NCBI GenBank assembly: GCA_033442325.1
Contig: JAWQFM010000002.1
Location: 2,507,144 to 2,571,143, forward strand
Reading direction: 5' to 3'
Origin: Salpingoeca rosetta
Lineage: Eukaryota > Protista > Choanoflagellata
DNA length: 64,000 nucleotides
Part shown: positions 2,638 through 62,448 of the stretch, in pieces
Position numbering within the stretch: the first letter of the stretch is position 1
Layout of the letters: the number at the start of each line of letters is the position of its first letter
Translations under genes and position numbers: made by a program
The notes under the pieces: generated by a model
The model's input: only the letters and a program-made list of their open reading frames with translations
The model's database searches: none
What the model was told of the DNA's origin: nothing

Positions 2638-5600
2638 CGCACACACTCACACACGCAAACACAAACACACCCACTCACACGCGCACACTCACATATCTCT
2701 CCACCTCGTTATTGAGTCACATTCACTTGTCGCCGGGCTCTTGGGCGCACCTTGAGGAGGACGGGAAGCAAGATGGACGCGCAGCGCCGGGAGCAGTCGG
2801 ACACGAACGTCAACACGCGTGGGTCGTCAAAGAAGAACATGGCGCGCTCAGCCACCTGAAGGGTAGCACAAAGCGGAATGGAGGGAGGTGGCCCAAGGTG
2901 AGGTTGGAATGGATAAGCAAATCGGGTGTGATGATGGCGGGGCCTTGGGGCCAAGGAAAAGGGGACAGCGTCCGAGCTGCGAGCTTATGGGTGTTCATCA
3001 AACGCAAGGATGAGCCAGGTACCTGAAAATGGTAGCTTTCCATGCAAGTTGCCAGGCGCTTCATGATGGCGGTCACGTTCTACTCAGTTCAGTGGCAGCC
3101 AAGTCAAACAGCCGGAAAGCCAAACAGCGGAGAGCGGGGTTGGGCTATGAGAAGGGCGCGAGAGGGCTGCAAGGGGTGGTAATCGAATAGCTACTCTCCA
3201 GGTCAAGAGCAGAGGATACCCCTCGACAACAGCGAGCTTGCAAGATGCACGCACGACCTACGTTCTTGAATGTGCCGTGGTTCATTTTCAGCACAAGCAC
3301 GTGTGCCAGCTCCAGGAAGAGCAGCTGCTTCAAGCTGGGCGTGTGCGGCCAGTGCTTGAGCACATACTTGATCGCCACGTCCGCAAGCTCGGGTTTCTTG
3401 TCCACAAAGCTGATGATGCATATCGTCAACTGTCCTCCGCCAAGCATCGGCGTGCAACACACGGAACAATCACAGAGAAAGCAACGGGAACACGGGTGAG
3501 GGTGTGGCGAACCGGAAACAGGAAGCAGAGCCAACGTGCAAGTGATCACACAGTGTGCATGGACGAACGTGCAGACGTGCGTGTGCCGTTTGTCGTGTGT
3601 CGCGTCATGTCACCTCTTGGAAAACGGTGTTGAGGCGGCGAACTTTGAGCAACGGCAGGAGAATGTGCTGGAACGTGTGGATGTGCTCTTCACGAACGGG
3701 GCGGGTGAACCCGTTGATGACCTTCTGCATGAACAGCAGCAGCGTACTCATGCCATTGAAGCGCTCTGTTTCGTACATGTACCTGCGCCGGTGTGGTGTG
3801 GCATTGGGTTGGAAGGGCCGTGGCAAGAACAGCCATGGGAACAGCGTACCAGGGTGAAGCGGTGCAAGGGTGAGGGTAAAGACAAACACCAATGCCATGG
3901 GGTGAGCCACTTGGAGAAGTGGGCATAGGGGTATGCACCAGCGCAACCTGGTTTCAAGGCCGTACGGCTGGATGCTCCTCACACACAATATAGACACGGA
4001 TAGCATTCGGTCGTATGGCCGTGCAGCAACAGACACGCACACACACACGTACAACAGTACGAACACACACACACACACTCACGCGCACGCGCACACTCCA
4101 CATCTCTCGCGGGCCGCACACGACGTGTACACACGCACCTGTAGAATATGTTGTAGATGGAAGTGCGCAGGAACGCTCGGCAGTCGATGGCTTTTGCGTA
4201 GATGACGTGCAGCACAACGCCAAGGCGTGCCCGTTCCCGCGGGTCCTCACAGTCAAGCATGTCCAGCAACTACAGCGCAACGCAAGTCGGTGCAGGGAGG
4301 GAAGGAGGGCGATGACGTGGCGGTAAGGTGGCCATGATGGGTGTGGTTGATGTATTGGGTTTGGGGTGCATGATGTGGTGTAGTAGTGTGGTAATGTCGT
4401 GTGTGGTGAGGCTATGAGTGGACTATTGTGTTGCGCTTTGTTCCTGATGCCTGATGCGACGGAATGTGCAAAACACATGAATCCAGGACCACCATGCACA
4501 TGAGAGGGCGCTGTACCCGCAGGAGTAGCTGCCGCGACAAGAACGTCCTTGCATGCGTCGTTGTCAGCACGGGGGACTTCATCAGCTTGATGAACATGGT
4601 GTAGACCAGCTATAGGGGCATGAACCATTGGTGAGCAAAGGTGTACTTCAGGCCATGCTTGTGAGTGGAGTCACAAGACAGCAGCGGGCAAGACGTGGAA
4701 TGGAGCCATGAGCGGGACAGAGACACACAAACACACACACACACACAAATAGAGACAGAGATAGCCAGAGACAAAGACAGACAGAGAGAGGGGGAGAGTG
4801 ATGCGCACACGCACACGCGCATCCAGACAGGCAGGGACATGCACATATGCAGACATGTGTTGCACCTCGAGGTGAGCCCATGCAGGCTCCAAGGCGTGCG
4901 TGTCTTCGTCAAGGTCTGGATCAGCGCCGCTGGCGTTGGTGGAAGGCGGCGGCAGTCGGCGAATACAGTTGGACTCAAACACTTCAATAAACCTCGGTAT
5001 GACTCCCTAGCATCGATACATACGATGCGTTTGCAAGAGGGCGGGGCAGGGCACGTGCAAAAAGCACACACCATTCGCGATATCCGTGTGAGCGCAACGA
5101 GTTCACAACACCAACAATGCAGCGAAGCAAGTGCGATTTGTGTTGTGCGCGCTTCTCGCCCTGTGCCTCGCTCACACGCACACCCAAACACAGCTACACG
5201 CAGTGATCTGTGTCCATCCTCGGGATAACGCCAGCAGGGGATTGTCAAAATATGTACGTGCTCACCTCCTCTCTGACATTGTCCTCGATCTTGTCAAACG
5301 ATGCACAGATGTCCGTCAGTGCTCGGGTCTTCAGCTTGCGGTTCTGGATCATGAGCGCGGTCAACAGTGCCAGTGTGTGAGAGTAAGTGTGAGTGAGTGT
5401 GAGAGTAAGTGAGTGAGTGTGTGAGTAAGTGAGTGAGAGTGTGAGCGAGTGCGTGTGTGTCGAAATGCTTGGTAACATTACAGCCACAAGTCACACGTTG
5501 CGCACCGTCGCTGTGCTGGGCTTCGTAAAGTCAAAGACAAGCGTGCATTGTTGGAGCTTCGCCAGCAACAGTGGCTTTTTCTGGAACAGCGACACATCTG

Positions 5601-6575: not shown

Positions 6576-6683
<108 letters not shown>

Positions 6684-7390: not shown

Positions 7391-8419
7391 ATGGTGCTGG
7401 TGCGTCACGCATGGGGGGAAGGGGAGGAAGGAACCGCAGCGGCGATGCAGCAGACGCCCGCACGACAGCCAAGCCAGGACGTGGCGCTGCCTCGACGGCA
7501 AAGGCCAAGATCCATTTCTCCAAGGAAAATTCTGAGCAGCAGCACCACCACCAGCAACACCACCAGCAACAACAACCACAATAACAACCACAATAACAAC
7601 AACAACAGTGACCACAGCATCAACAGTGTCAGCATCAGGGATGTCAACTGGCGATGGCTGATGGGTGGAATCGTAGTTGCCCTGATTGCCACACGGTGCA
7701 TTCTGAGTGCGTGCCCTCGTCGAGGACAGGATGTGGGATCGAGCTCAGGTTTGCAGCAAGTCGGGCCGTCTCCACTTGAGACATTTTCCGCCAAGTAAGT
7801 CCTTTCCTTGAAGAAACAATGTACAGCACGCAATATGCGACGGCCAGCTTATTTGGAACTGCACAGCTGCTTGCGTGAGGTGACAGTTCACCCTTTCACC
7901 ACTGACAAGTGCTGGGTCTTGACTTTTCCCTCATTGTACTGCATTGTAGGTACCCACATTACTCCCACCACCGGCAGCTTGCCAGCTTGCTCAAGCTCAT
8001 CAGTGGAGAGGTGTGTGCATGAAACGTGCGTGTGTATGAATCGTACGTGCGTGCGCATGCTTCTGTGTGTGTGTGTGTATGTGTATGCTTGCGCTGCGTG
8101 TGTGACCAAGGGCCGGGTTCACGCTGGCATCGTCATGAGGTCGTTGGGGCTGCTGCTCATGCAAACCTCCCTTGTTACTGCACAGAACACCAGCGGCAAG
8201 GCAACGACAGTGGCCATTGTTGGCCCAGATGATGAGCTTGGCCGGGAACTGCTCCGCGTATTGACAGCCGGACAAACCACGCAAACAGTTGATGGTGCGC
8301 ATCAGGCATGTTTGCTGGATGTGCGCATCAGGCATGTTTGCTGGATGTGCGTGTGCGTGCGTGTGTGTGTTTGTGTGCGTGCGTGTGTGTGTGTGTGTGC
8401 GCGCGCGTGTCGGTGTGTC

Positions 8420-8462
<43 letters not shown>

Positions 8463-8611
8463 AGAGGAAAAATGAAAGATAAAGAAAATAAGAGAAAAGG
8501 GAAAAACGGGACGCGAATGCATAACCCTACCGGAAGACAGTATCCGGGCATCTTCACGTCAATGATAAAATTAGCGATACTTGGTTGAGGCGGCATAATC
8601 AGTCGGTGGTG

Positions 8612-8664
<53 letters not shown>

Positions 8665-9942
8665 CACTTGCAGGAGCGACAACTCATCCAAACGTGGCGT
8701 ACGCTGTGATTTTCGTGCAGGCAACGTGTGGCGTGAGCGAAGCGCAAACGATGGCCCATCCTGGCGACAGTGGTACGCACACAGCACCCAAGTGTGCGCA
8801 CTCATACACGCACACACACATACACAAACACACACGCACACACAAACACACACACACACAAACACACAAACACACACATGCAAGAACATAGTAACGCCGC
8901 CTTGCGTCCTTGTCATTTGCGCGGATTTTTGCACTGCATGGCACTGCTTGCATCGCATATGTCATGGTTGCGATTGGTTTCCAAGGGTAATCGGTCAGAT
9001 CAAGCCCGTGCTTGAGCAGAGCCCGACAGCTGTGATTGTCATGGAGAACCTACCAGAAGAGCAAGGTGCAGACACCCCTTCCACCCACACCTCGGTCTTT
9101 CCTGCACGCAGTGTGAATGTATGGCTTGGTGTCTGCGTGCGTGCGAAGCAAGGGGGGGCATGAATGAGTGTATTCTGCTGTGCTGATTGCACGTGGTGTC
9201 GTCATCCCCGCATCAGCGCACGAATCAGAAACAGGCATGCTTCTTTCCGTGCTTACCTTTGGTCGCACGTGCATGTGCACGAGCAACTCATCGCTTGCTG
9301 TATCGCTGCTGTCGTTACTGTGTCTTCAGGGGCACTTGATCCACTGCACCACTGCTTCAACGACAAGATGCCGCTGCTGGTTGCTGGGAGTCACGTGTCC
9401 TGCCAGCACGCAACCTTCATCTTCGTTATTAAGGTCAGTGCTTGCGAGTGTGTGCGTGTTTTGTGAGTGCCTGCGAGTGTTGCAAGTGTACGCGTGTTTC
9501 GTGAGTGGTTGCGAGTGGATGTTTGTTTTGTAAGTGGTTGCGAGTGTGTGCATGTGCATATGTGTGAACGTGTACATATGTGTTGCCGACAAATGATTCC
9601 TTGTGCGCCCATCTCGTGCCCTTCACGCCACGTCGCTTTTTTTTTTGTGTGTGTGTGTGTGTGTGGCTGTGTGTGTGTGTGGCTGTGTGTGTACAGGATT
9701 GGCCCACAGCGACAAGCGCGGGCGTCGCAGAGTTAGCGGCAGCGTGCAGTGACACATCGCCAAGCCGGTGCTCCCAGTTGCTATCGGGAGAGCCAATGCA
9801 TGCGCTCATGACCTCGCCAGCGGCGAGAGAAAAGAACCATCTGATTGACACGCGCGCAACACAGCGACGGGTGCGATGGATCCTCCCAGCCATGCACAGC
9901 AGTCGTGGTGATGGTGATCAAGGGGTGACGATGAAGAGGTGA
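7391..9942 (+). CDS. Type II membrane protein with a degenerate Torsin-type AAA+ domain (LAP1/LULL1/TOR1AIP-like candidate)
   Basis: Seven phase-compatible GT-AG exons: 7391-7794, 7950-8010, 8186-8294, 8721-8772, 8986-9065, 9330-9433, 9697-9942. The product has a basic/N-rich N-terminus, one TM segment ([22 protein letters not shown]), then ...[53 protein letters not shown]...VDG...[43 protein letters not shown]...[13 protein letters not shown]...[15 protein letters not shown]. The gene model is solid; the family call is by eye. Confidence 0.6.
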
Positions 9943-10575
9943 TGATGACGACGACGACGATGATGATGATGACGACGACGATGATGATGATGATGATGCT
10001 GGGAGATTAGAGAGGTGGATCAACCAGTGAAGGTGCGTGTGTTTGTTGTTGCTGTGTGTGTGTGTGTGTTTGAGAAGGGGACGACAGGCTGGACTGCACG
10101 GTGAACGTCGTGTTCAGAGAGACAAGCGTTTCACTACCGGAGCACACGGTGACGCTGGCAATAGCAACACCAGCACCGACACCACCACCCAATACGGCCC
10201 CTTCCTGTGCTGAATGGAAGACTGCAGATGGATTGGATCAGCTCATCGCCATTCCTGTACCTTTGTCAGTTACATTTCTGATGTGTGCACGCGCGCTGTG
10301 GCGTTTGAGGCGGCTGATGTGCTGGTTGCGACTGCGTCAGGTCGCACGTTGATTGGTGTGCGTGCGGGCATGACTTTCAAAACGCCATCTTGTTGTTACA
10401 TTACACGACACACTCCAACATCATTCCAGACGCGATGGTGTGGCAGGTAGTTTATTTGCAATTAAACACAAGGTCACGCCAGCGAGCAGTTGTTGTGCCG
10501 TCCAAGGTCGGCGTTGAAACCTTCTCAAATCATCATCGTCAGCAGCAGCACCATCATCAGCAGCAGCAGCCGTGA

Positions 10576-13968
<3,393 letters not shown>

Positions 13969-24725: not shown

Positions 24726-27383
24726 CACGCAAACATAAACGCACACACACACATATAATACTTTCCCCTGCGCTCACCACGCAACACGTCGCACACCCAA
24801 CACGATGCAGGCGCGGACGACCTGACACACAGCCCGCTGATTGAGGTGCTCTCGTCGTTCATTGACATGGGCTTCTACGACAACACCATCAACACGCTGG
24901 TCGACGACCTCACCAATGGCACGGGCACCATCACCGCGCCCCTGACCAATGCATCTGTGCACGTGCCGCTGGGAAACCTCGGCAGCATCACCCTCGCCGC
25001 CAGCGAGTTTGCTGTGGGCGGTCTGGACTCGTGGTCCAACCAGACAATTGTGCTGCACCCGCACGACAACACGAGCCTGCTCTCCAACATTGACCTGCGC
25101 ACGCTCGACCTCAACGTCTCCGTCTCTGTTGTCGTCAACACATCCACGTCCACGCAGCCGCTGAACGAGAGCGCCACCATCGTCTTTGACCTCAACAACG
25201 TCGACCTCATTGCAGACATGTTCCTCGCCCTGGACGAGGTAACACTCGACGGCCTACCATCCTCCCGCGTCCTCAACATCGACTGTCTTCTCGCCGCAAC
25301 ATCGGACGTCAACGTCACCCAGTTGCTGCTTGACTTCACGGTCGACCAGCTCGCCATCCTGGCCGGCGCTGGCTCCACGGAGCAAGACATCGACCTCCTC
25401 CTCACCAACACCATCGATGTGGTTGTTGCTGCGTACGATAAGGCCATTGGTGACGTCGTAAACTACGTGCTTATGGAGGTGGTGCGCCCCGATGTGAACG
25501 TCGCTGCCTCTGCCGCCATCAACAACGCCACCTGCCCACCTGTGGCCAAGCCCTCGTCTCTCGACGCATCGGCGCTCGCAGGGTACCTTGCCTCTGCTGG
25601 CACCAGCTTCATCTTCATCCTCATTGGCATTGCCCTGTTTGCCGTCGGCCGCAAGTACGCCAAGAGGCGCCGTCACCAGAAGCGCAAGCAGCAGCAGCAG
25701 CAGAAACAGCAGCAACAGGCGATGAACGGCAACGGTGTGGGCGCTGGCAATGGCAATGGCGCCGGTGTTGCTGGCAGTCGCGCCGCTCGCCTCAGCAGCC
25801 GGGATTCGTTTGCCACCTTCGCCGACGAGCAGGACGAAGGCGAGGCAACGGCACTGCTGGCCAGTCGCATCGACCGCACGTCCTCTGCCGCCCCCTGTCT
25901 GGCCCTGGAGCCGACCGTGTCCACCTTTGCCCGCTACTCGGTGCCGCTCGTGCTGCTGGCCACCGTTGCCATCTTCATCTGGTCCAACAACAGCGTGGGC
26001 GCCTCTGTCATCCCCGCCATCACCCTCGGCGATGATGTGATCAAGTTTGGCCCGCTCTTCTCCTTCGACCTCACCAACAGCGTGCGCGACATGTGGAACG
26101 CCAAGGTGTACGCGCTCTCCCTCCTCATTGGCGCCTTCTCCGGGAGCTGGCCTTACCTCAAGCTGATGCTCATGCTTGCGTCGTGGCTGCTGCCCACGGC
26201 ATGGCTCTCTGTTTCTCGCCGCGAGTTTCTCCTGCGCATGCTCGATGCGCTTGGCAAGTGGTCTCTCATCGACAGCTTTGTGCTGGTCATGATGATCGTG
26301 GCCTTCCGCTTCCACCTCGACATCAGCAAGCTTGTGGACGAGCCCGGCCTCGCCTCCTTTGACATCTTCGTCCAGCCCGGTCGCGGCATCCACACCTTCC
26401 TCATTGCCACCATCGTCTCCCTCACCATGTCGCACATCATCCTCCACATCCACCGCACCGCCGTCGACTACCACCGCCACGGCGGCCGGCACTATGACGA
26501 GCGCGACGATGACGACGGCGAGAACCAGTCCCTCTCCCGCCACACGTTCACCGCGCAGACGGGCGAAATGTACCGCTTCACCGTCCTGGGCGCCGTCCTC
26601 GTCGTCTTTGCGTTGCTTGCAAGCATCGTCCTCCTCTCTGTCGGCACGTCCATCGACGCGTTTACGTTTGAGTTCAAAGGCCTTGCGGCGCTGGCGATGA
26701 GCCTTGACGGCGACGATCCAAACCGCACCTTCTCCCTCATCACCATCGGCACCACCATCCCATCGTCCGTGGAGAAGCCGGACAGCTTTGGCATTCGCTA
26801 CATCCAGGCCCTCTTCTTCCTGCTCGCGCTGGCGGTGCCGCTCGTCCATCTCGTCGCCCTCATCTGCATCTGGTTCCTCCCGCTCTCAACACACGCGCAG
26901 CGCCACCTCTTCCACGCTGCGGAGGTCCTCAATGCGTGGTCGTGCCTCGACGTGTTTGTTGTCTCCCTCCTGGCGGCTGTGCTTGAGATTGGCCAGTTTG
27001 CCCAGTTTATCATTGGTGACAAGTGCGACCCCATCGATGCCATCATCAAGCCTCACGTCAAGAAGTGGCCGCGCTTGCGTGATGACGCAAAGTGCTTTGA
27101 TGTGAAGACGGACCTTGAGTCCGGCAGTTGGGCGCTGTTTTCCGCAGCCGTCGTCAGCGCTCTCACCATCTGGGTGGTGATGCCACTGTGTCACCGCGCT
27201 GTTCGGGAGCGGTTGTACGGGCCCGCTGCTGCCCACACGCGCGACCAGCGCTTGCACACCGTCAACAGCATGGCGGCGCTGTCGGAGGAGCCCAAGAAGT
27301 GTGCAGCGTGTACATCGTGTGCTCCGTGCATGCATGCATTTGAGAAGATGCACGTCATCAAGTACGATGGCGTGCAGGCGTAG
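23539..27383 (+). CDS. Multi-pass membrane protein: extracellular BPI/TULIP-like repeats fused to two PqiA (paraquat-inducible A / LetA-YebS)-like TM domains
   Basis: Two exons, 23539-24484 and 24811-27383 (phase 1). Signal/TM segment RVPILSIFALVVVLVACPLFLLC, then a beta-rich region with many N-x-S/T sequons (LVIPVPDISLP...LSIQCDGVY...SGPLKL). PqiA-like motifs occur twice: FSGSWPYLKL...LGKWSLIDSFVLVMMIVAF and LNAWSCLDVFVVSLLAAV. Confidence 0.8.
24508..24593. repeat. (GAT)n microsatellite in the single intron of the TULIP-PqiA gene
   Basis: Direct observation. Confidence 0.95.
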
Positions 27384-28356: not shown

Positions 28357-45460
<17,104 letters not shown>

Positions 45461-45999: not shown

Positions 46000-48002
46000 T
46001 CACAGCTGCTGCGCAAGGTAAGCGTCAACAAGATCCGCCAAGCGCACAAAGTCGGCCTGCTCAATGTACACCTGTGCAGACAGGCGCACCCACCACGTGT
46101 CCTGGTCAGGGTCAGCCGAACACCCGTCTTGGTTGCCGGCGTTGCCGTCCTCCTGCGCACTGCTGCTGCTACCGCCACCATAGCCCGTCAGGAACGACAC
46201 CGTGGAACCGAGGTGATCTGGGTTGATCCAGCGGTCACACGCTATCACTGCCGCATCGCCATCACTACCAGCACCACCACGAACATCACCACGACTACCA
46301 CGACCAGCGCCAGCGGTGCCAGCGGTGGCAGTGCCGCACGTGCAGTCTGGGTTGCGTGTCATGCGGAACACGACAATCTGCACGTCGTGGTTCTCGATGA
46401 GCCAAGGCGTCAGGCCCTGTGCGAGGGCGGCATCTGTGGTGGGCAAGCGGACGGTGGCCATGGCACTGACCATGCTGTGCGGCGCCGCAGCTTCCGTGCC
46501 CCAGCGGCCGACAAGGTAGTCTGTCGCCCAGCGCGCGAGGTTGGTCATGTACTCACGCACGGCAGCGTCGCCGCCAATGTTCTTGCGAAACGCAAAGCCG
46601 GCCGTCACGCTGGCAAAGGGCGTGTAGTCGCGCGTGCCCGTGTAGAGGAAGTCACGCATGTAATCGTGGAAGCCAAAGTCTGAGGAGACGACGGTGGGGA
46701 TGGTGTTGCGTTGCAGGCTGGGCCGCGTCCACAGGAAGGCAGATCCCTTGGGCGTGTACAGCCACTTGTGGCCGTTGCTAACGTAGAAGTCCACGCCGAC
46801 GGCGGCAAGCTGCGTGATGTTGATGGGGATGTTGCCGAGGGCGTGTGCCCCGTCGATAAGCACGTGCTTGACGCCGTGCGCCTTGGCCACCTTGGTCATC
46901 TCCACGATGGGCAGGATGACCGCAGGCGTGCTGACAATGTGGGAGATGGAGAGGATGGTGGGAATGCTGTTGGGCTGCTGGCGCAGGGCGTTGTCCAGCA
47001 GCTGCACCACCTCCTCTGCGGACTTGACGGGGAACTGCACTGGGATCTTGCGCACGCGTGCGCGTCCGGCTCTGCCAAGCACCTCGGCCGTGTTGGTGAC
47101 CATCGGGTAGGCGCAGGAGAGGAAGGCGACGGTATCATTAGCGGTGAGCGGGAAGGAGCGCAGTACGGCATTGACGCCCGAGCTGGCGTTCTCCACGAAC
47201 ACGACGTCGTCTGCGTTTGCACTGACGTACGCCGCCAGCTGTGCGCGTGTTGCATCCAGCAACCGCTGGTATCCGCCTATCGCAGTGTATGTGTGAGTGA
47301 GTGGGTGAGCAAGTGAGTGAGGGAGTGTGTGTGTGTGAGCGAGCGAGTGAGTGAGCGAGTGAGTGAGTGAGTGAGTGAGTGAGTGAGTGAGTGAGTGAGT
47401 GAGTGAGTGAGTGAGTGTGAGTGAGTGAACAAAACGGAAGGTCCACTGTGTGTGAAGGCACTCCTTGGGCTTGCTGTTCTGGTGAGAGCATCACCGCACC
47501 TCTGAACCAATCGTCGGGGCGTGCTTCCATTTGGGTGGTCAGCTGTTCCTGGTAGGCACGCACGGACTTGGGCGTCGCACCGAAGCTACCATGGTTCAAG
47601 TCTGCGCATGCATGTTCAGTGTGTGTTGTGTATGTGAGTCAGAAGCAGGTGCTGTATCCTTGCAGTGGAGTCACCGCACAGCGCAACGTGCGCCACATTG
47701 CATCGCACCGCACACCACAGCACGCAACAAGCAGCAGCAGCAGCAGCACCATGCACTGGCCATCCGCGCTCACTGACAACCACCTCCTAGCCTTGCAACA
47801 ACCCAACACCTCACGTCACATCGCACAGCCACGGGTCCGTGTGTCACGTACTCAGAAAGCCTTCTTGCAGTTGAAAGTGTTCCAGCATGCCGTGGCCAAA
47901 CGCAGGCGCAGCGGTGGCGTGGCTTGATGTGCTGGTGCCCACGCACCCGCAGCAGCCAAGCACCACCACTGTCACTGTCATCAGCGTGAACACACGCACC
48001 AT
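46000..48002 (-). CDS. Class V PLP-dependent enzyme (isopenicillin-N epimerase / L-cysteine desulfhydrase / Egt2 C-S lyase-like) with predicted signal peptide
   Basis: Exons 47852-48002, 47500-47601 and 46000-47276. Motifs FLNLNHGSFGATP, VFVENASSGVNAVLRS, ISHIVS, LIDGAHALG, SNGHKW (PLP lysine), GTRDY and VRLSAQVY. The N-terminus MVRVFTLMTVTVVVLGCCGCVG is hydrophobic. Confidence 0.9.
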
Positions 48003-56782: not shown

Positions 56783-58464
56783 CAATAGCACGACACCTTG
56801 TCTGCACAAGTGTGATCGTGTGTGTGTGTGTGTGTGCGTGCGTGCACCTGAGCATGTGCGTGTGTGGTTACCAGCTTGCCTCCCTTCTCTCTTTCTCTCT
56901 CCTTTTCCTCTCCTCATCTCATGGCATACCAACATCGCGGCTGTGGTTTCGTCTGACATGAAATACTGCCTGTCGCTGCAGACGTGCGCGTGACATTTGC
57001 GAAGGTGTGCCCCGTGAGCACTGCACAGGCCGTAGCCAAGCAGGGCCGATCGGCCGGCGCCGCGCAAGAGGAACTGCAGAACAAGCTGCATGCTGCACTG
57101 GAGGACCTTGCCGGCTGGTCCGAGGCTCCTGTGGCAGCGCATGAGCGTACGGCACTGCTTGCAGAGCCAGCCAGTCGCGACCAGCCCCGCCGGCCTTTAC
57201 TGCTCGAGGAAGACAACGCTTTTCTCGTCAACAAGTACCGTGACATCCGCACGCACGTTCTCGCTTTGGAGGGGCATGTGCAGCGCCTCTCAAGGGTCAG
57301 CAAGACGCTAACCTGCGTGATGGACGAGTCACAGCCCATGGACGCTGCCTTGCCGCTGTCCCCGGCGGTGCTCTACGAGTGCCTCAGGCGCAACCTGCAA
57401 GCCGTTGACGTTGCCTTGGAGCTCACGCGGCGTCAGAACCAGCAGGCCCTCAACGACATCAGCGTCATGTCGCATGAGCTGGACGCCCTGCAGCACGAGC
57501 TGATGGCTGTGCAGAAGGACAAGTTCCAGGCTGAGCAGATCTTCACGTCCGGTACCGTGGCGCGCCAGAAAATCCCCCAGCTGCGCGATCACGTGACGTT
57601 TCTGCAAAGCCGGGAGTCCAAGCTGGCCACGGAGATCAGCCAGAAGAGCCCCCATCTGCAACGGCGCAAGCAGCACCAGACCGCGCTCACTCAATACGCA
57701 AAGAGCCTCGAGGCCCTCCAAAAAGAATGCATTGATGTGCGAAGACAGATCCTCTGGTGCCGTGACGATCCTAACGAGGACTCCAGCGTTGCGGCCATCA
57801 CAGCCTCCAGCCCACTGGTGCGGTCATTCGAGCTTGCTTGTTTTGCAACAGTGCGCGTGCTCTTCTCTTTCTGATTGCGTTGGTGTACTACACACGTGCA
57901 TTTGTGAGCACGGCGTTGTTGTCATTGTTGTGTGCTCGTTGGTCCACTTGGTGTGCGCACGTGTGCGCGCGCGTGTCACATGTGCATTGAGCATCACGCT
58001 GGCCTTTTGCATGTGGAGCTACCTGCTTTCTTTTGCTCACACTCTTGTGCTGTGGGCATGACAAATGTGCACAGGGCCAACGCGTGCTGTCGTGCGCAAA
58101 ACAAACCAAGGGAGCATTTAGCAGCTTGTGCCAGCAAGCGTTTTCCCGCATTGGTGAAGCGCGCTGTGTGCTCATGATCATCTTTCAAGCCACCAAGCAC
58201 AAGCTACGGCGCGAGGACCTGCTTCTGACGGCGTGCAGCAGAGCGCTCATGCAGCACCTCGGCAGCGCTCGCTCTCGCATCGTCCGGGACACAATTTCAG
58301 AGCGCAAGCAGCTTGAGGAGGAGCTGAAGAAGCGCAGCGACGACGCTTTCAACGAGATCATGGCGTCGCTGGGCGAAACACACAAGGTCAAAGCCAAGAA
58401 GGGCAGTGACAAAGGCGGCAAAGCCAAGAACAAGAAAAAGAAGGACAAGTCGCGTCGCAAGAAC

Positions 58465-58520
<56 letters not shown>

Positions 58521-61500
58521 GAAGCGGAAGCAGACGCAGCAGAAGCAGCAACAACAACAACAGAAGCGGAAGCAGACACAGACGCAGACGCAGCAAAAGC
58601 AGCAGCAGAAGCAGCAACAGCAACCTAGCGAACGTGGCGGAAGGCCTTCGGGTGATAGCGAGTCAGCAGTGGGCAACCACAACGAAGCCATACCCTCGCC
58701 CACAGAAGACACGCCGACGGGCACCAATCACCGACAGTCCAAGTCATCGGCAGCATCTCCTGCCACCATTGCCGCGTCAGTCAGCAAGCAGGCTGTGCCA
58801 TCCATGGATGACGAGGTGTCCCTGCTTGCTGACTCTGGCATGCATGCCAGCGTGATGGTACCCGAAGACGCTCTCCATAGCAGTGCCCCCTGGGAGGAGA
58901 ACGAGTGGCAGGTTCCGCGTGGTCACGCTTCTCAGCGCAAGCAGCGACTGCAAGCACGTGGGCGCAACGCCAAGCCGAGCAACAGTGATACAGCAGCAGC
59001 GGCAGCAGCGGCCGAGAGTCACGAGGCAAAGCAACACACAAGGCGCGCCCGTTCCAAGGGGGGCAAGGGACGTGGTACCAACCAACGTCCCAACAGAACG
59101 CACGAAGACGCACCAGAGGCGAAGCAGAGGCCTGCCACACTTGACACGAAAGGCATAGCCAAGAACAAAGCCTCCGAGCGCAAACAGGCATGGCCAGGCC
59201 AGCAGAAGCAGCAGAAACAGGCGGATTTGAAGAAGCCGCCAATGAAGCAGCAGCCAGTCAAGCAGCAGCCAGTCAAGCAGCAGCAAGTCAAGCAGCAGCA
59301 AGTCAAGCAGCAGCAAGTCAAGCAGCAGCAAGTCAAGCAGCCAGTCAAGCAGCAGCAAGTCAAGCAGCAGCCAGTCAAGCAGCAGCAAGTCAAGCAGCAG
59401 CAAGTCAAGCAGCAGCAAGTCAAGCAGCCAGTCAACCAGCAGCCAGTCAAGCAGCAGCCAGTCAAGCAGCAGCAAGTCAAGCAGCAGCCAGTCAACCAGC
59501 AGCATGTGAAGCAGCAGCCAGTCAAGCAGCAGCAGGGGCAGCCAGTGAAGGACAAGAAGCAGCAGCAACAATTGAGGCCATGGAAGCAAGAGCGGACTGT
59601 TATGATGACCAAGGACACGCAACAGACGTCCAGCGTACCCCGGGCTGCAGCTTCCGCGTCCAAAACAGCGGCAGCCATCGCGCCTGCTCGGGGTGCTGTG
59701 AATTTTGCTGATGGTGGCTCCCAGCAAGGGCTGTCCGACGTTGCTTTTGGGTTTGATGAGGCTACAGAGGAAACAGGGAAGGAGAGCGCGCGTGAGCAGA
59801 CACAAGCAAAAGAGAACTCCCCCGCATCTACGTCCAGGCAGCAGCCGAAACAGCCGAAGCAGAAAGAGCTGCCGAAGCAGCAGGAGCAGGCGCAGCAGCC
59901 GAAGCAGCAACAGCAGCAGAAGGTGGAAGAGCGGAAACAGTCGAAGCAGCAAGAGAAGGAAGAGCGGAAGCAGCAGAAGCAGCAAGAGCAGCAACCGCTG
60001 AGACAATCGAAACAGCCGAAGTCGCAAGAGAAGGAAGAGCGGAAGCAGCAGAAGCAGCAGAAGCAGCAAGAGCAGCAACCGCTGAGACAATCGAAACAGC
60101 CGAAGTCGCAAGAGAAGGAAGAGCAGAAACAGCAGAAGCAGCAAGAGCAGCAACCGCTGAGACAATCGAAACAGCCGAAGCCGCAAGAGAAGGAAGAGCA
60201 GAAACAGCCGAAGCAGCAGGCACAGCAGCAACAGAAGCAGAATCAGGATGAGCAGCAACAACAGCAGAGACAGGAAGAGAAGCCAAAGCAGGAAAGGCAG
60301 GAAGAGCAGCCAGGCCACGGTGCTCTCAATGGTGGCGGTGCGGGCATGATGGTACCAGGGACAAACAACGCACCCCCTGCGCCTCCTTATGCTGGACAGT
60401 CCTCTCAACCACCTTTGATGCCGGCCCCGGTGCCCATGCATCCGCAAGGTGGCGGGGTTGTGCCTGGAAACCAACACCAGATGCCGCAATACGCGCCCGA
60501 CCAACACGGCATGATGCCCCCACACCCATGGCAGGAGCAGCAGGCGCACATGGGCCACACAAACGGGGTCATGAACCCTCACACACACTCGTACTACCCG
60601 CACCATCCTCAGCAGTATGTACCTAACACCCAGGTCCCTGGTTATGGCCACCAGCACATGCAGCCCCACACCGCGCAAGTGCAAGTGCAGCCATTTCAAC
60701 CATCGCCCTACCAGCCATCCCAGTCATACCAGCCATACCCGCCATACCCGCCATACCCGCCATACCAGCAACCGCAGCCAGCACAGCCAGCACAGCAACC
60801 GCAGCCAGATCAATCATCCCAGCCAGATCAATCATCCCAGCCATCCCCGACGCCCTCCGACGATGCGCCTGCGCGTCCAACTCGTGTGCTGTTCAAGTTG
60901 ACAGGGGCCTCACCAGAGGCCAACACGGCAAGCACCACTAGCGGTGAACCAACGTCACCTATCACAGCACCACCAGCGCAGGCACCGGCGAATTTGACGG
61001 CGGAAGGGAAGGGCGCGGCGGACACCACCGCTCCTGACAGCAGCGGCTCGGACTGCGAGGAGAAAGAGAAAGAGAAGCCGAACAGCGGGACGGGCAAGAG
61101 CAAACGAGAGGAGGAATGCAAGGGAGCAGAGGTTAACGAGATGGCGGGGCAGAACGGCTCGGTTAAGGAAAGCAAAGCGAACAAGGCTACGAAAGAGCAG
61201 GGCGTGGTCAACGTGGTGCAAGAGTCAAAGGAGAAAACAGAGAAAGTCAAGGGGTCAACGATGACGGAAGCGCAGAGTGTGCAGGAGGACAAGAGTGAGG
61301 AGCAGGAGAAGACGAACCACGTCGTGAAAGAGCAGCAGGCTGAGGGTGAAGCAAAGAGTGAACAGCGCCCAAAGGAAGCTGGGCAAGAGACGGCAACCAC
61401 AGCCCAGAGCGAGGAAGAGAAGACAAGGGAGGAGGAAGGCGGAAATAGAGACGGTGGTGTCGAAAGCGGTATCCAAGCTGAGCAGGAGCCGGAAGAATCA

Positions 61501-62325
61501 GGGGCCAAATCGCGGGAGCAGGGCGACACAGAAGAGCAACAACCGGTGAATGATGATAACAGCCACACGGAGGTGAAGACAACAGGCCACCAGCGTCATG
61601 CCCTGCGCGGTCATCCCCGCAACGAGCGCGATCAGCGCGGCCGCCACCACCCACATCATCCGAGCCCGCAGGACCCTCGCCGCAAGCAGCACCACAATCG
61701 CCAAAGCCACCGTACACCTCGCAAGCAACAGCATCCGCGGCCGCCGTTTCATGCCCAGCACCAGCACCAGCACCAGCACCAGCAGTTGCCACACCCAGGG
61801 CTCGATGCTTCTATGGCACCATTTCACCCAACCGGGGGCCCCATCGCCGGCGGCCCGCAGGCACCACAGATGCAACAAGTGCCGTACATGCATCAACAGC
61901 ACATGCAGCACACGCCACAAGTGCCGTACATGCAGCAAGTGCCCCAAGTGCAGCACATGCCTCAACAGCAGCAGCAGTTCATGCCTCAGCAGCACACCAT
62001 GCAGTTTATGCCTCAACAACAACAGCAGCATATACCGATAGCCCCAGCTGGTGGCCAGCACCCAGGAATGGTAGCAGGTGCTGGCGAGGGTACGATGCCA
62101 CCTGTGATGCCGTATCCTGCTCCTCAACCGCCCGTGCCAAACGGCGGTGTGCACCACGGCGCACCAATGGCACAACACATGTACATGGGCCCATACATGG
62201 GCCAACTGCAGCAATTTACGCACGGTGCGATGCATGTGTTTGTGTATATCGTGCACTGCATTTGTATTTCTCATGCTTTCCACCCGGGTGTATGCCAATG
62301 CCTCATCATCTCACACTGGGGTGCG

Positions 62326-62384
<59 letters not shown>

Positions 62385-62448
62385 TGGTTGAGCAGGGCCT
62401 CATTTCACAGGCGGACGAAAGCGTAACTCTCGCAACAAGTTCAAATGA
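54384..62448 (+). CDS. Large hypothetical protein: possible MATH-like N-terminus, coiled coil, Lys-rich patch, very long Q/P/H-rich low-complexity region
   Basis: Candidate exons: 54384-54398, 54494-54543, ~54757-54795, ~54885-55338, 55692-55778, 56022-~56116, ~56371-56664, ~56982-57818, ~58072-62224 and 62411-62448 (GGRKRNSRNKFK*). The long open frames 56984-57874 and 58033-62391 support coding. The 5' exons are tentative. Confidence 0.65.
59245..59533 (+). repeat. Coding minisatellite, ~15-nt unit GTCAAGCAGCAG(C/A)CA encoding VKQQQ/VKQQP
   Basis: About 19 tandem units are directly visible, with occasional 12-nt variants. Confidence 0.95.
59935..60215 (+). repeat. Coding tandem repeat, ~3 copies of QEKEE(R)KQQKQQEQQPLRQSKQPK
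   Basis: Near-identical copies of gcaagagaaggaagagc...caaccgctgagacaatcgaaacagccgaag. Confidence 0.9.

Follow-up and report, generated by a model that had tools for sequence, protein, structure and literature searches.

A predicted membrane-protein gene with a conserved arginine-rich C-terminus from Salpingoeca rosetta and its resemblance to torsin activators

Introduction

No AAA+ ATPases other than torsins are known from the lumen of the endoplasmic reticulum (ER) and the nuclear envelope. Torsins have been connected with DYT1 dystonia and with the biogenesis of nuclear pores, and their arginine finger has to come from a second protein. Here we describe a candidate for such a cofactor, encoded by a predicted seven-exon gene, the target, in a stretch of 64,000 nucleotides of Salpingoeca rosetta DNA (contig JAWQFM010000002.1), hereafter the window. 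All coordinates are positions in this 64-kilobase (kb) window, and the target lies on its + strand.

In the described cofactors LAP1 and LULL1, a transmembrane (TM) segment anchors a luminal AAA+-like domain of ~230 residues that contains neither Walker motifs nor the small domain (PMC4358337, PMC4999309). A strictly conserved arginine (R563/R449) marks the base of helix alpha5 and precedes the C-terminus by ~20 residues, a conserved disulfide (C424-C582; C310-C468) connects helix alpha1 to the C-terminus, and the extraluminal part of LAP1 is basic, with an isoelectric point (pI) of 8.5-10 (PMC4358337, PMC4999309). Homologues of LAP1 escape sequence searches, torsins being its nearest relatives (PMC4358337). 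LAP1 superimposes structurally on ClpB-D2, torsin motifs reportedly stand out at once in a comparison with ClpB-D2, and a common ancestor has been proposed for torsins and LAP1. The torsin/cofactor pair has been described as animal-specific, occurring 'in all metazoans' (PMC7175109).

The target is an apparently unannotated, predicted membrane-protein gene with a conserved arginine-rich C-terminus. The resemblance of its product to a torsin activator is architectural and at the level of motifs only. As judged from these features, a cofactor of the torsin/LAP1 lineage would be the single likeliest explanation of the target, with a probability of roughly 0.4.

Results

A closed reading frame of seven exons

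Seven segments with GT...AG borders join into a single frame of 1122 nucleotides that encodes 373 residues (Table 1). This bears out an earlier note on this DNA, which had proposed a seven-exon gene with the same limits, 7391-9942, that is invisible as a single open reading frame (ORF). The start ATG at 7391 opens a 135-codon ORF, the stop is the TGA at 9940-9942, and the phases of all seven exons close without a frameshift. In exon 4, the obvious donor (GTACGC after 8772) breaks the frame, which closes with the donor GTGTGC after 8791 and the acceptor at 8985, followed by G. The donor of exon 3 is triplicated by a 26-bp unit, GTGCGCATCAGGCATGTTTGCTGGAT, present in 2.2 copies at 8295-8351 and starting exactly at that donor; candidate GTs follow positions 8294, 8320 and 8346, and use of the second or third of them (8320, 8346) would shift the frame. 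Arrays of (TG)n sit in the introns of the target, not in its exons.

Codon usage was scored with a model trained on the Pfam-supported exons of neighbouring genes, the 1149 stop-free segments of the window serving as reference. Among these segments, exons 1 to 7 rank at percentiles 91.6, 97.9, 93.0, 79.5, 96.2, 99.3 and 78.4; the codon usage of the target is therefore coding-like, yet below that of the conserved neighbour genes. Because the GT-AG frame closes, the codon usage is coding-like and the last exon has a syntenic orthologue (see below), the locus 7391-9942 is judged to be a real gene with a predicted spliced model. It appears to be so far unannotated.

Simple repeats surround the gene: a (TGA/CGA)n array at 9940-9998 opens with its TGA stop, and a perfect (TGA)36 array lies upstream, at 6576-6683.

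The last exon in a marine relative

A search with an exon of the neighbouring SH3YL1-like gene retrieved a contig of the Logan run SRR14727191 (L001), which is genomic DNA of an AT-rich relative with a guanine-cytosine (GC) content of 38%. This contig carries SH3YL1 and, convergent with the SH3YL1 3' end, an exon finishing ...IVDSRATERRIRWILPTFFP-stop. The same convergent order is present in the window, where the target stops at 9942 and the SH3YL1-like gene at 10576. In the alignment of the last exons of the window and of L001 (A1), both start at an identical column, in phase 0, and the position and phase of intron 6 are kept in L001.

Between the two sequences, 11 of 18 residues in the stretch of the arginine-rich block are identical (tblastn E 9e-05). 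Six of these 11 are encoded by different codons, synonymous changes that show selection acting on the protein in this block; the GC content shifts from 55% in the window to 38% in L001. A motif of the type D-x-RAT-x-RR-x-RWILP occurs once in the 64 kb of the window. Outside the block, exon 7 is only ~24% identical overall to the L001 exon, which points to a fast-evolving family. The earlier assignment of this motif as an arginine finger gains from the observation that no other part of the single orthologue fragment retrieved is conserved as well as RRxRWILP. Two conserved cysteines further upstream, C309 and C317, may be joined in a local disulfide; such a bond would agree with a luminal location, at which these cysteines and the one sequon of the product (N156) hint. 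An AlphaFold model of exon 7 alone (2 sequences) contained only short helices, with a predicted local distance difference test (pLDDT) score of 58, and is uninterpretable.

Architecture of the predicted product

Residues 1-86 form a tail with a pI of 11.2, followed by a single hydrophobic segment at residues ~87-107, in agreement with the basic low-complexity N-terminus and the one TM helix described earlier. The best 19-residue Kyte-Doolittle window, 2.04, falls on this TM segment, and the runner-up is the strand-like region 273-291. The C-terminal domain had been put at ~200 residues; it measures 266 (residues 108-373), with a pI of 6.7, one NxS/T sequon (N156) and six cysteines. It contains five hydrophobic strand-like runs (162-169, 199-208, 244-251, 271-278 and 285-292), whose spacing of 35-45 residues would fit that typical of a beta-alpha-beta sheet. 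As stated in the earlier note, the chain stops soon after the arginine motif: it ends 17 residues past RRVRWILP (349-356), which leaves no room for an AAA+ lid (small domain).

The nucleotide-binding motifs were likewise correctly described as missing. The pattern G.{4}GK[STN] is absent from the product, so that no GK[ST] stands at the Walker A position, and AVIVME (246-251), at the Walker B position, reads hhhhME, not hhhhDE. In exon 3, TTVAIVG is followed by a stretch shaped as a P-loop and helix, without GK[ST], while the final run of exon 6 ends in a lysine at the position of the AAA+ sensor-1 asparagine. As a P-loop, GENTSGK (154-160) was discarded, since it stands ahead of the strand and not after it, and since a splice junction falls within it. 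Torsin ATPases have a Walker A motif GxxxxGK[N/S/T], the DE pair and the sensor-1 asparagine, whereas the target lacks all three and thus cannot be an ATPase. The lack of Walker A and B is a feature that is not specific to LAP1 and LULL1.

Two short elements of the basic tail were noted by eye. Within residues 36-46, SISPRK fits the cyclin-dependent kinase (CDK) site pattern S/T-P-x-K/R, and the RRQRPR cluster could be a nuclear or inner-membrane targeting signal.

Comparison with LAP1, LULL1 and torsins

In the target, as in LAP1 and LULL1, a single TM segment precedes the C-terminal domain, which measures roughly 230-265 residues across these proteins, and Walker A, hhhhDE and a C-terminal small domain are lacking; a basic, presumably extraluminal tail is a further feature in common with LAP1 (pI 11.2 in the target). 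The chain ends 21-24 residues beyond R349, R350 and R352, compared with ~20 for the LAP1/LULL1 arginine, and these arginines are followed, as in LAP1 and LULL1, by hydrophobic residues and L-P. By eye, RRxR-WILP presumably aligns with the LAP1 arginine-finger segment, which would make these arginines putative equivalents of R563. The target differs from LAP1 and LULL1 in having three arginines instead of one and a tail of only 86 residues, and its organism lies outside the animals so far sampled for these proteins.

With torsins, the target has in common a presumed location in the lumen of the ER and nuclear envelope and a hydrophobic N-terminal anchor, which is found in some torsins. By eye, we take exons 5-7 to be colinear with the torsin Walker-B block hhhhDE, the alpha3 block GLID..FLD, the pre-sensor-1/strand-4 block DG-VS-Q-A-FIF and the block LID...FLPL, and presumably to fit these better than the LAP1 blocks, as a lead and not as a test. 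The six correspondences of the earlier note are by-eye matches as well. Its pairing of TVDG with RIDG is in conflict with AYAVIFV as strand 2, and an 11-residue by-eye match with 7 identities is, alone, far from significant. With the HCLR-clade AAA+ proteins (ClpB-D2, ClpA-D2, ClpX, Lon) the target shares only a generic succession of hydrophobic strands.

If the target is a cofactor of the torsin/LAP1 lineage, its C-terminal domain of ~265 residues could be read as a nucleotide-free alpha/beta module derived from the P-loop/AAA+ ancestor of that lineage. Placed in the ER/perinuclear lumen, this candidate luminal domain would dock on a luminal ATPase of the torsin type, at its ATP face, and one of the arginines with which the last long helix of the domain would end (R349, R350 or R352) would be inserted into the active site of the partner. 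The target would then act as an arginine finger in trans that switches on hydrolysis, as LAP1 and LULL1 do.

Similarity searches and evidence against a torsin cofactor

A number of results weigh against this assignment. None of the seven exons, searched separately, matched a relevant Pfam family, exon 1 giving low-complexity matches only. No torsin, LAP1 or LULL1 chain was found in the PDB, either by phmmer with exons 3, 6 and 7 separately or by a profile search with exon 7 and its orthologue. Smith-Waterman comparison of the candidate luminal domain with six E. coli modules of ClpA, ClpB, ClpX and Lon gave z values of -0.8 to 0.7, the level of shuffled sequences, with controls at z 8 to 116. 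Exon 7 had 0 matches among 1.84 billion representative proteins, alignment A1 retrieved no confirmed relative from metagenome, prokaryote-genome and viral contig collections, and no torsin gene is present within the 64-kb window. At the level of the protein, the LAP1/LULL1 disulfide is without a counterpart, no cysteine being found after residue 317 or in the presumed helix alpha1; the L001 orthologue stops 4 residues after RWILP, also without a cysteine in its tail; and the charges flanking the TM segment are nearly balanced, which leaves the orientation undecided and does not favour a luminal C-terminus. At the level of the gene model, several further in-frame GT-AG pairs are possible at the exon 4/5 junction, making this boundary ambiguous, and the codon signal is lowest in exons 4 and 7 (79.5 and 78.4). 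Lastly, torsins have been described as 'not in single-cell organisms' (PMC4358337).

The negatives obtained by sequence are weak evidence, as the detection of LAP1 homologues by sequence is documented to be difficult (PMC4358337); moreover, single-exon queries are pieces of 20-81 residues and have little power. The chains that phmmer did return from the PDB (a designed repeat protein, a methionine aminopeptidase and, for exon 6, XRCC3 with E 0.17) were dismissed as chance matches. A word search of 5.8 billion proteins with exon 3 within its 224-residue ORF gave no candidates in the length range searched, the search of protein collections with A1 gave 8 word candidates, none of them scoring, and none of seven ORF products of the window, of which two belong to the target gene, was on record in an exact look-up. 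With a degenerate DNA pattern encoding D-x-RA[TS]-x-RR-x-RW-h-LP, 7 matches were obtained, all of them random occurrences in GC-rich bacterial contigs, with stops. Synteny was equally unproductive: the Elysia SH3YL1 locus has no neighbour within 10 kb, and further SH3YL1 loci (Logan SRR26909563, TARA) yielded no syntenic target, their contigs ending early or being too short. The literature searched contained no papers linking torsin with choanoflagellates. In the window itself, GWKGRGKN at 3807 (+) resembles a torsin Walker A motif and is the only GxxxxGKN present; it is antisense to an exon of the PP2A B56 gene and was set aside as a chance match.

The target could be a membrane protein confined to its lineage whose fold is unrelated, for example another Rossmann-like one or a degenerate P-loop (e.g. 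a dead sulfotransferase or kinase-like protein). RRxRWILP would then have another purpose, for instance as a strand of the structural core, as a site for binding or as a signal for sorting, and the likeness to torsin and LAP1 would be coincidental. We regard this as a serious contender, although short of even odds. It would account for the blank result of all computed comparisons with known families, for the missing LAP1-type disulfide and for a motif likeness of a size that short matches often reach by chance. The pattern IVGP....G...LL..L in exon 3 also speaks for it, being common to many P-loop classes and not specific to AAA+ proteins. An unrelated fold would further agree with the reported absence of torsins from unicellular organisms (PMC4358337). 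It leaves to coincidence, however, that the target agrees with LAP1 and LULL1 in TM anchor, basic tail, domain size, lack of a lid and C-terminal arginine cluster, and that this cluster is the most strongly conserved element.

The missing disulfide, together with the common ancestor proposed for torsins and LAP1 and, as a lead, the by-eye likeness of exons 5-7 to torsin blocks more than to LAP1 blocks, could also point to a catalytically dead torsin paralogue, without Walker A/B, sensor 1 and lid, that arose independently in this lineage and is not an orthologue of LAP1/LULL1. Such a protein might serve as a cap or regulator of torsin oligomers, whether or not it acts as an arginine finger. 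We find this improbable, since torsin motifs are called recognisable against ClpB-D2 and the target shows no measurable similarity even to the Clp and Lon modules.

Finally, the seven-exon model could be partly or wholly wrong, with only the last exon real or with another upstream structure, or the locus could be a decaying pseudogene. No protein of any length with exon 7, and none with exon 3 in the length range searched, was found in the collections, the exon 4/5 junction is ambiguous, chained GT-AG ORFs are easily built in GC-rich DNA, and the codon signal is modest next to that of the neighbour genes. A wrong model is nonetheless very unlikely in our view, given that all seven segments rank above the 78th percentile, five of them above the 91st, that the phases close without a frameshift with the repeats confined to introns, and that the position and phase of intron 6 are kept in L001.

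Neighbouring genes and lineage

The window is eukaryotic nuclear DNA with 55.5% GC, whose short GT-AG introns are packed with (TG)n/(CA)n microsatellites; it encodes many poly-Q, poly-S and poly-H tracts, contains one assembly gap (41780-42299) and gave no match in an Rfam scan. The exon of the SH3YL1-like gene is 60-64% identical to its best named matches, from molluscs and fish, and 83-86% identical to the marine sequences L001-L005. These marine relatives, L001 from Logan SRR14727191 and L002-L005 from TARA Oceans metagenomes, differ widely in GC content (38%, 51% and 55%). A tree of the SH3YL1 domain places the window together with one Logan and one TARA Oceans contig (support 97); the trio belongs with animals in a clade of full support, separate from fungi and outside the group of molluscs and fish. 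From this tree position, the lineage of the window is holozoan and not human. A non-animal origin, as supposed in the earlier note, is plausible, and the compact genes, the short introns and the recurrence in ocean metagenomes would suit a protist such as a choanoflagellate.

Other genes of the window are listed in Table 1. A PqiA-like frame is unusual for a holozoan nuclear genome; this one encodes several segments of hydrophobic character and a linker of poly-Q. The EML stretch, with the 520-N gap inside it, could be one very large gene or a set of tandem EML genes.

Table 1 Features of the target gene and of its neighbours in the window. The slash in a donor marks the exon border.
Feature	Position	Strand	Remarks
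Exon 1	7391-7794	+	start codon, basic tail, TM segment, first 27 residues of C-terminal domain; donor AA/GTAAGT
Predicted TM helix	7649-7711	+	residues ~87-107; one Arg inside
Exon 2	7950-8010	+	residues 135-155
Exon 3	8186-8294	+	residues 156-192; NTS sequon; strand-like run TTVAIVG
Exon 4	8674-8791	+	residues 192-231; one strand-like run; 3' boundary ambiguous; weakest exon
Exon 5	8986-9065	+	residues 231-258; strand-like TAVIVME, then NLPEE
Exon 6	9330-9433	+	residues 258-292; MPLLVAG, VSCQH, ATFIFVIK
Exon 7	9697-9942	+	residues 293-373 and TGA stop
Cysteine pair C309, C317	9745-9771	+	both kept in L001; spacing 8, against 7 in the orthologue
C-terminal arginine-rich block, D343-x-R-A-T-x-R349-R350-x-R352-W-I-L-P356	9847-9888	+	invariant columns in alignment A1; candidate arginine-finger region
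PP2A B56 regulatory subunit gene	3145-4075	-	upstream; two exons, each E ~1e-13
SH3YL1-like gene	10576-13685	-	Pfam Ysc84 and C-terminal SH3; convergent with target; microsynteny anchor
PqiA-like frame	24846-27383	+	845 codons; two matches to bacterial-type PqiA (paraquat-inducible protein A), E 8.7e-16
EML (echinoderm microtubule-associated protein-like) stretch	28649-42898	-	many exons match first and second beta-propellers
Class-V aminotransferase exon	46000-47262	-	E 1.4e-20
Q/K/E/P-rich frame	58033-62391	+	1452 codons, extremely Q/K/E/P-rich; (VKQQQ)n-type repeats; no Pfam family matched

Discussion

The predicted product of the target brings together a basic tail, a single TM anchor and a domain without nucleotide-binding motifs or lid, which ends in a conserved arginine-rich block. 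In its most specific form, the assignment to the torsin/LAP1 lineage would make it a LAP1-like, lid-less and nucleotide-free torsin partner, from a unicellular or at least non-bilaterian holozoan, that has torsin-like blocks and lacks the animal-type disulfide. It would then be a living intermediate that links torsin with its activator, and the torsin/cofactor pair would be older than animals. This fuller proposal is a tentative one, and we hold it to be rather doubtful.

Should the resemblance to torsins and LAP1 be coincidental, the result would be a smaller one, a conserved orphan membrane protein missed by annotation. If the assignment as a torsin cofactor is true, the presence of such a gene in a protist related to animals would place the origin of the torsin system before multicellularity. 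The function of torsins could then be studied in a simple organism, and the way in which an ATPase subunit became a dedicated activator might also come to light.

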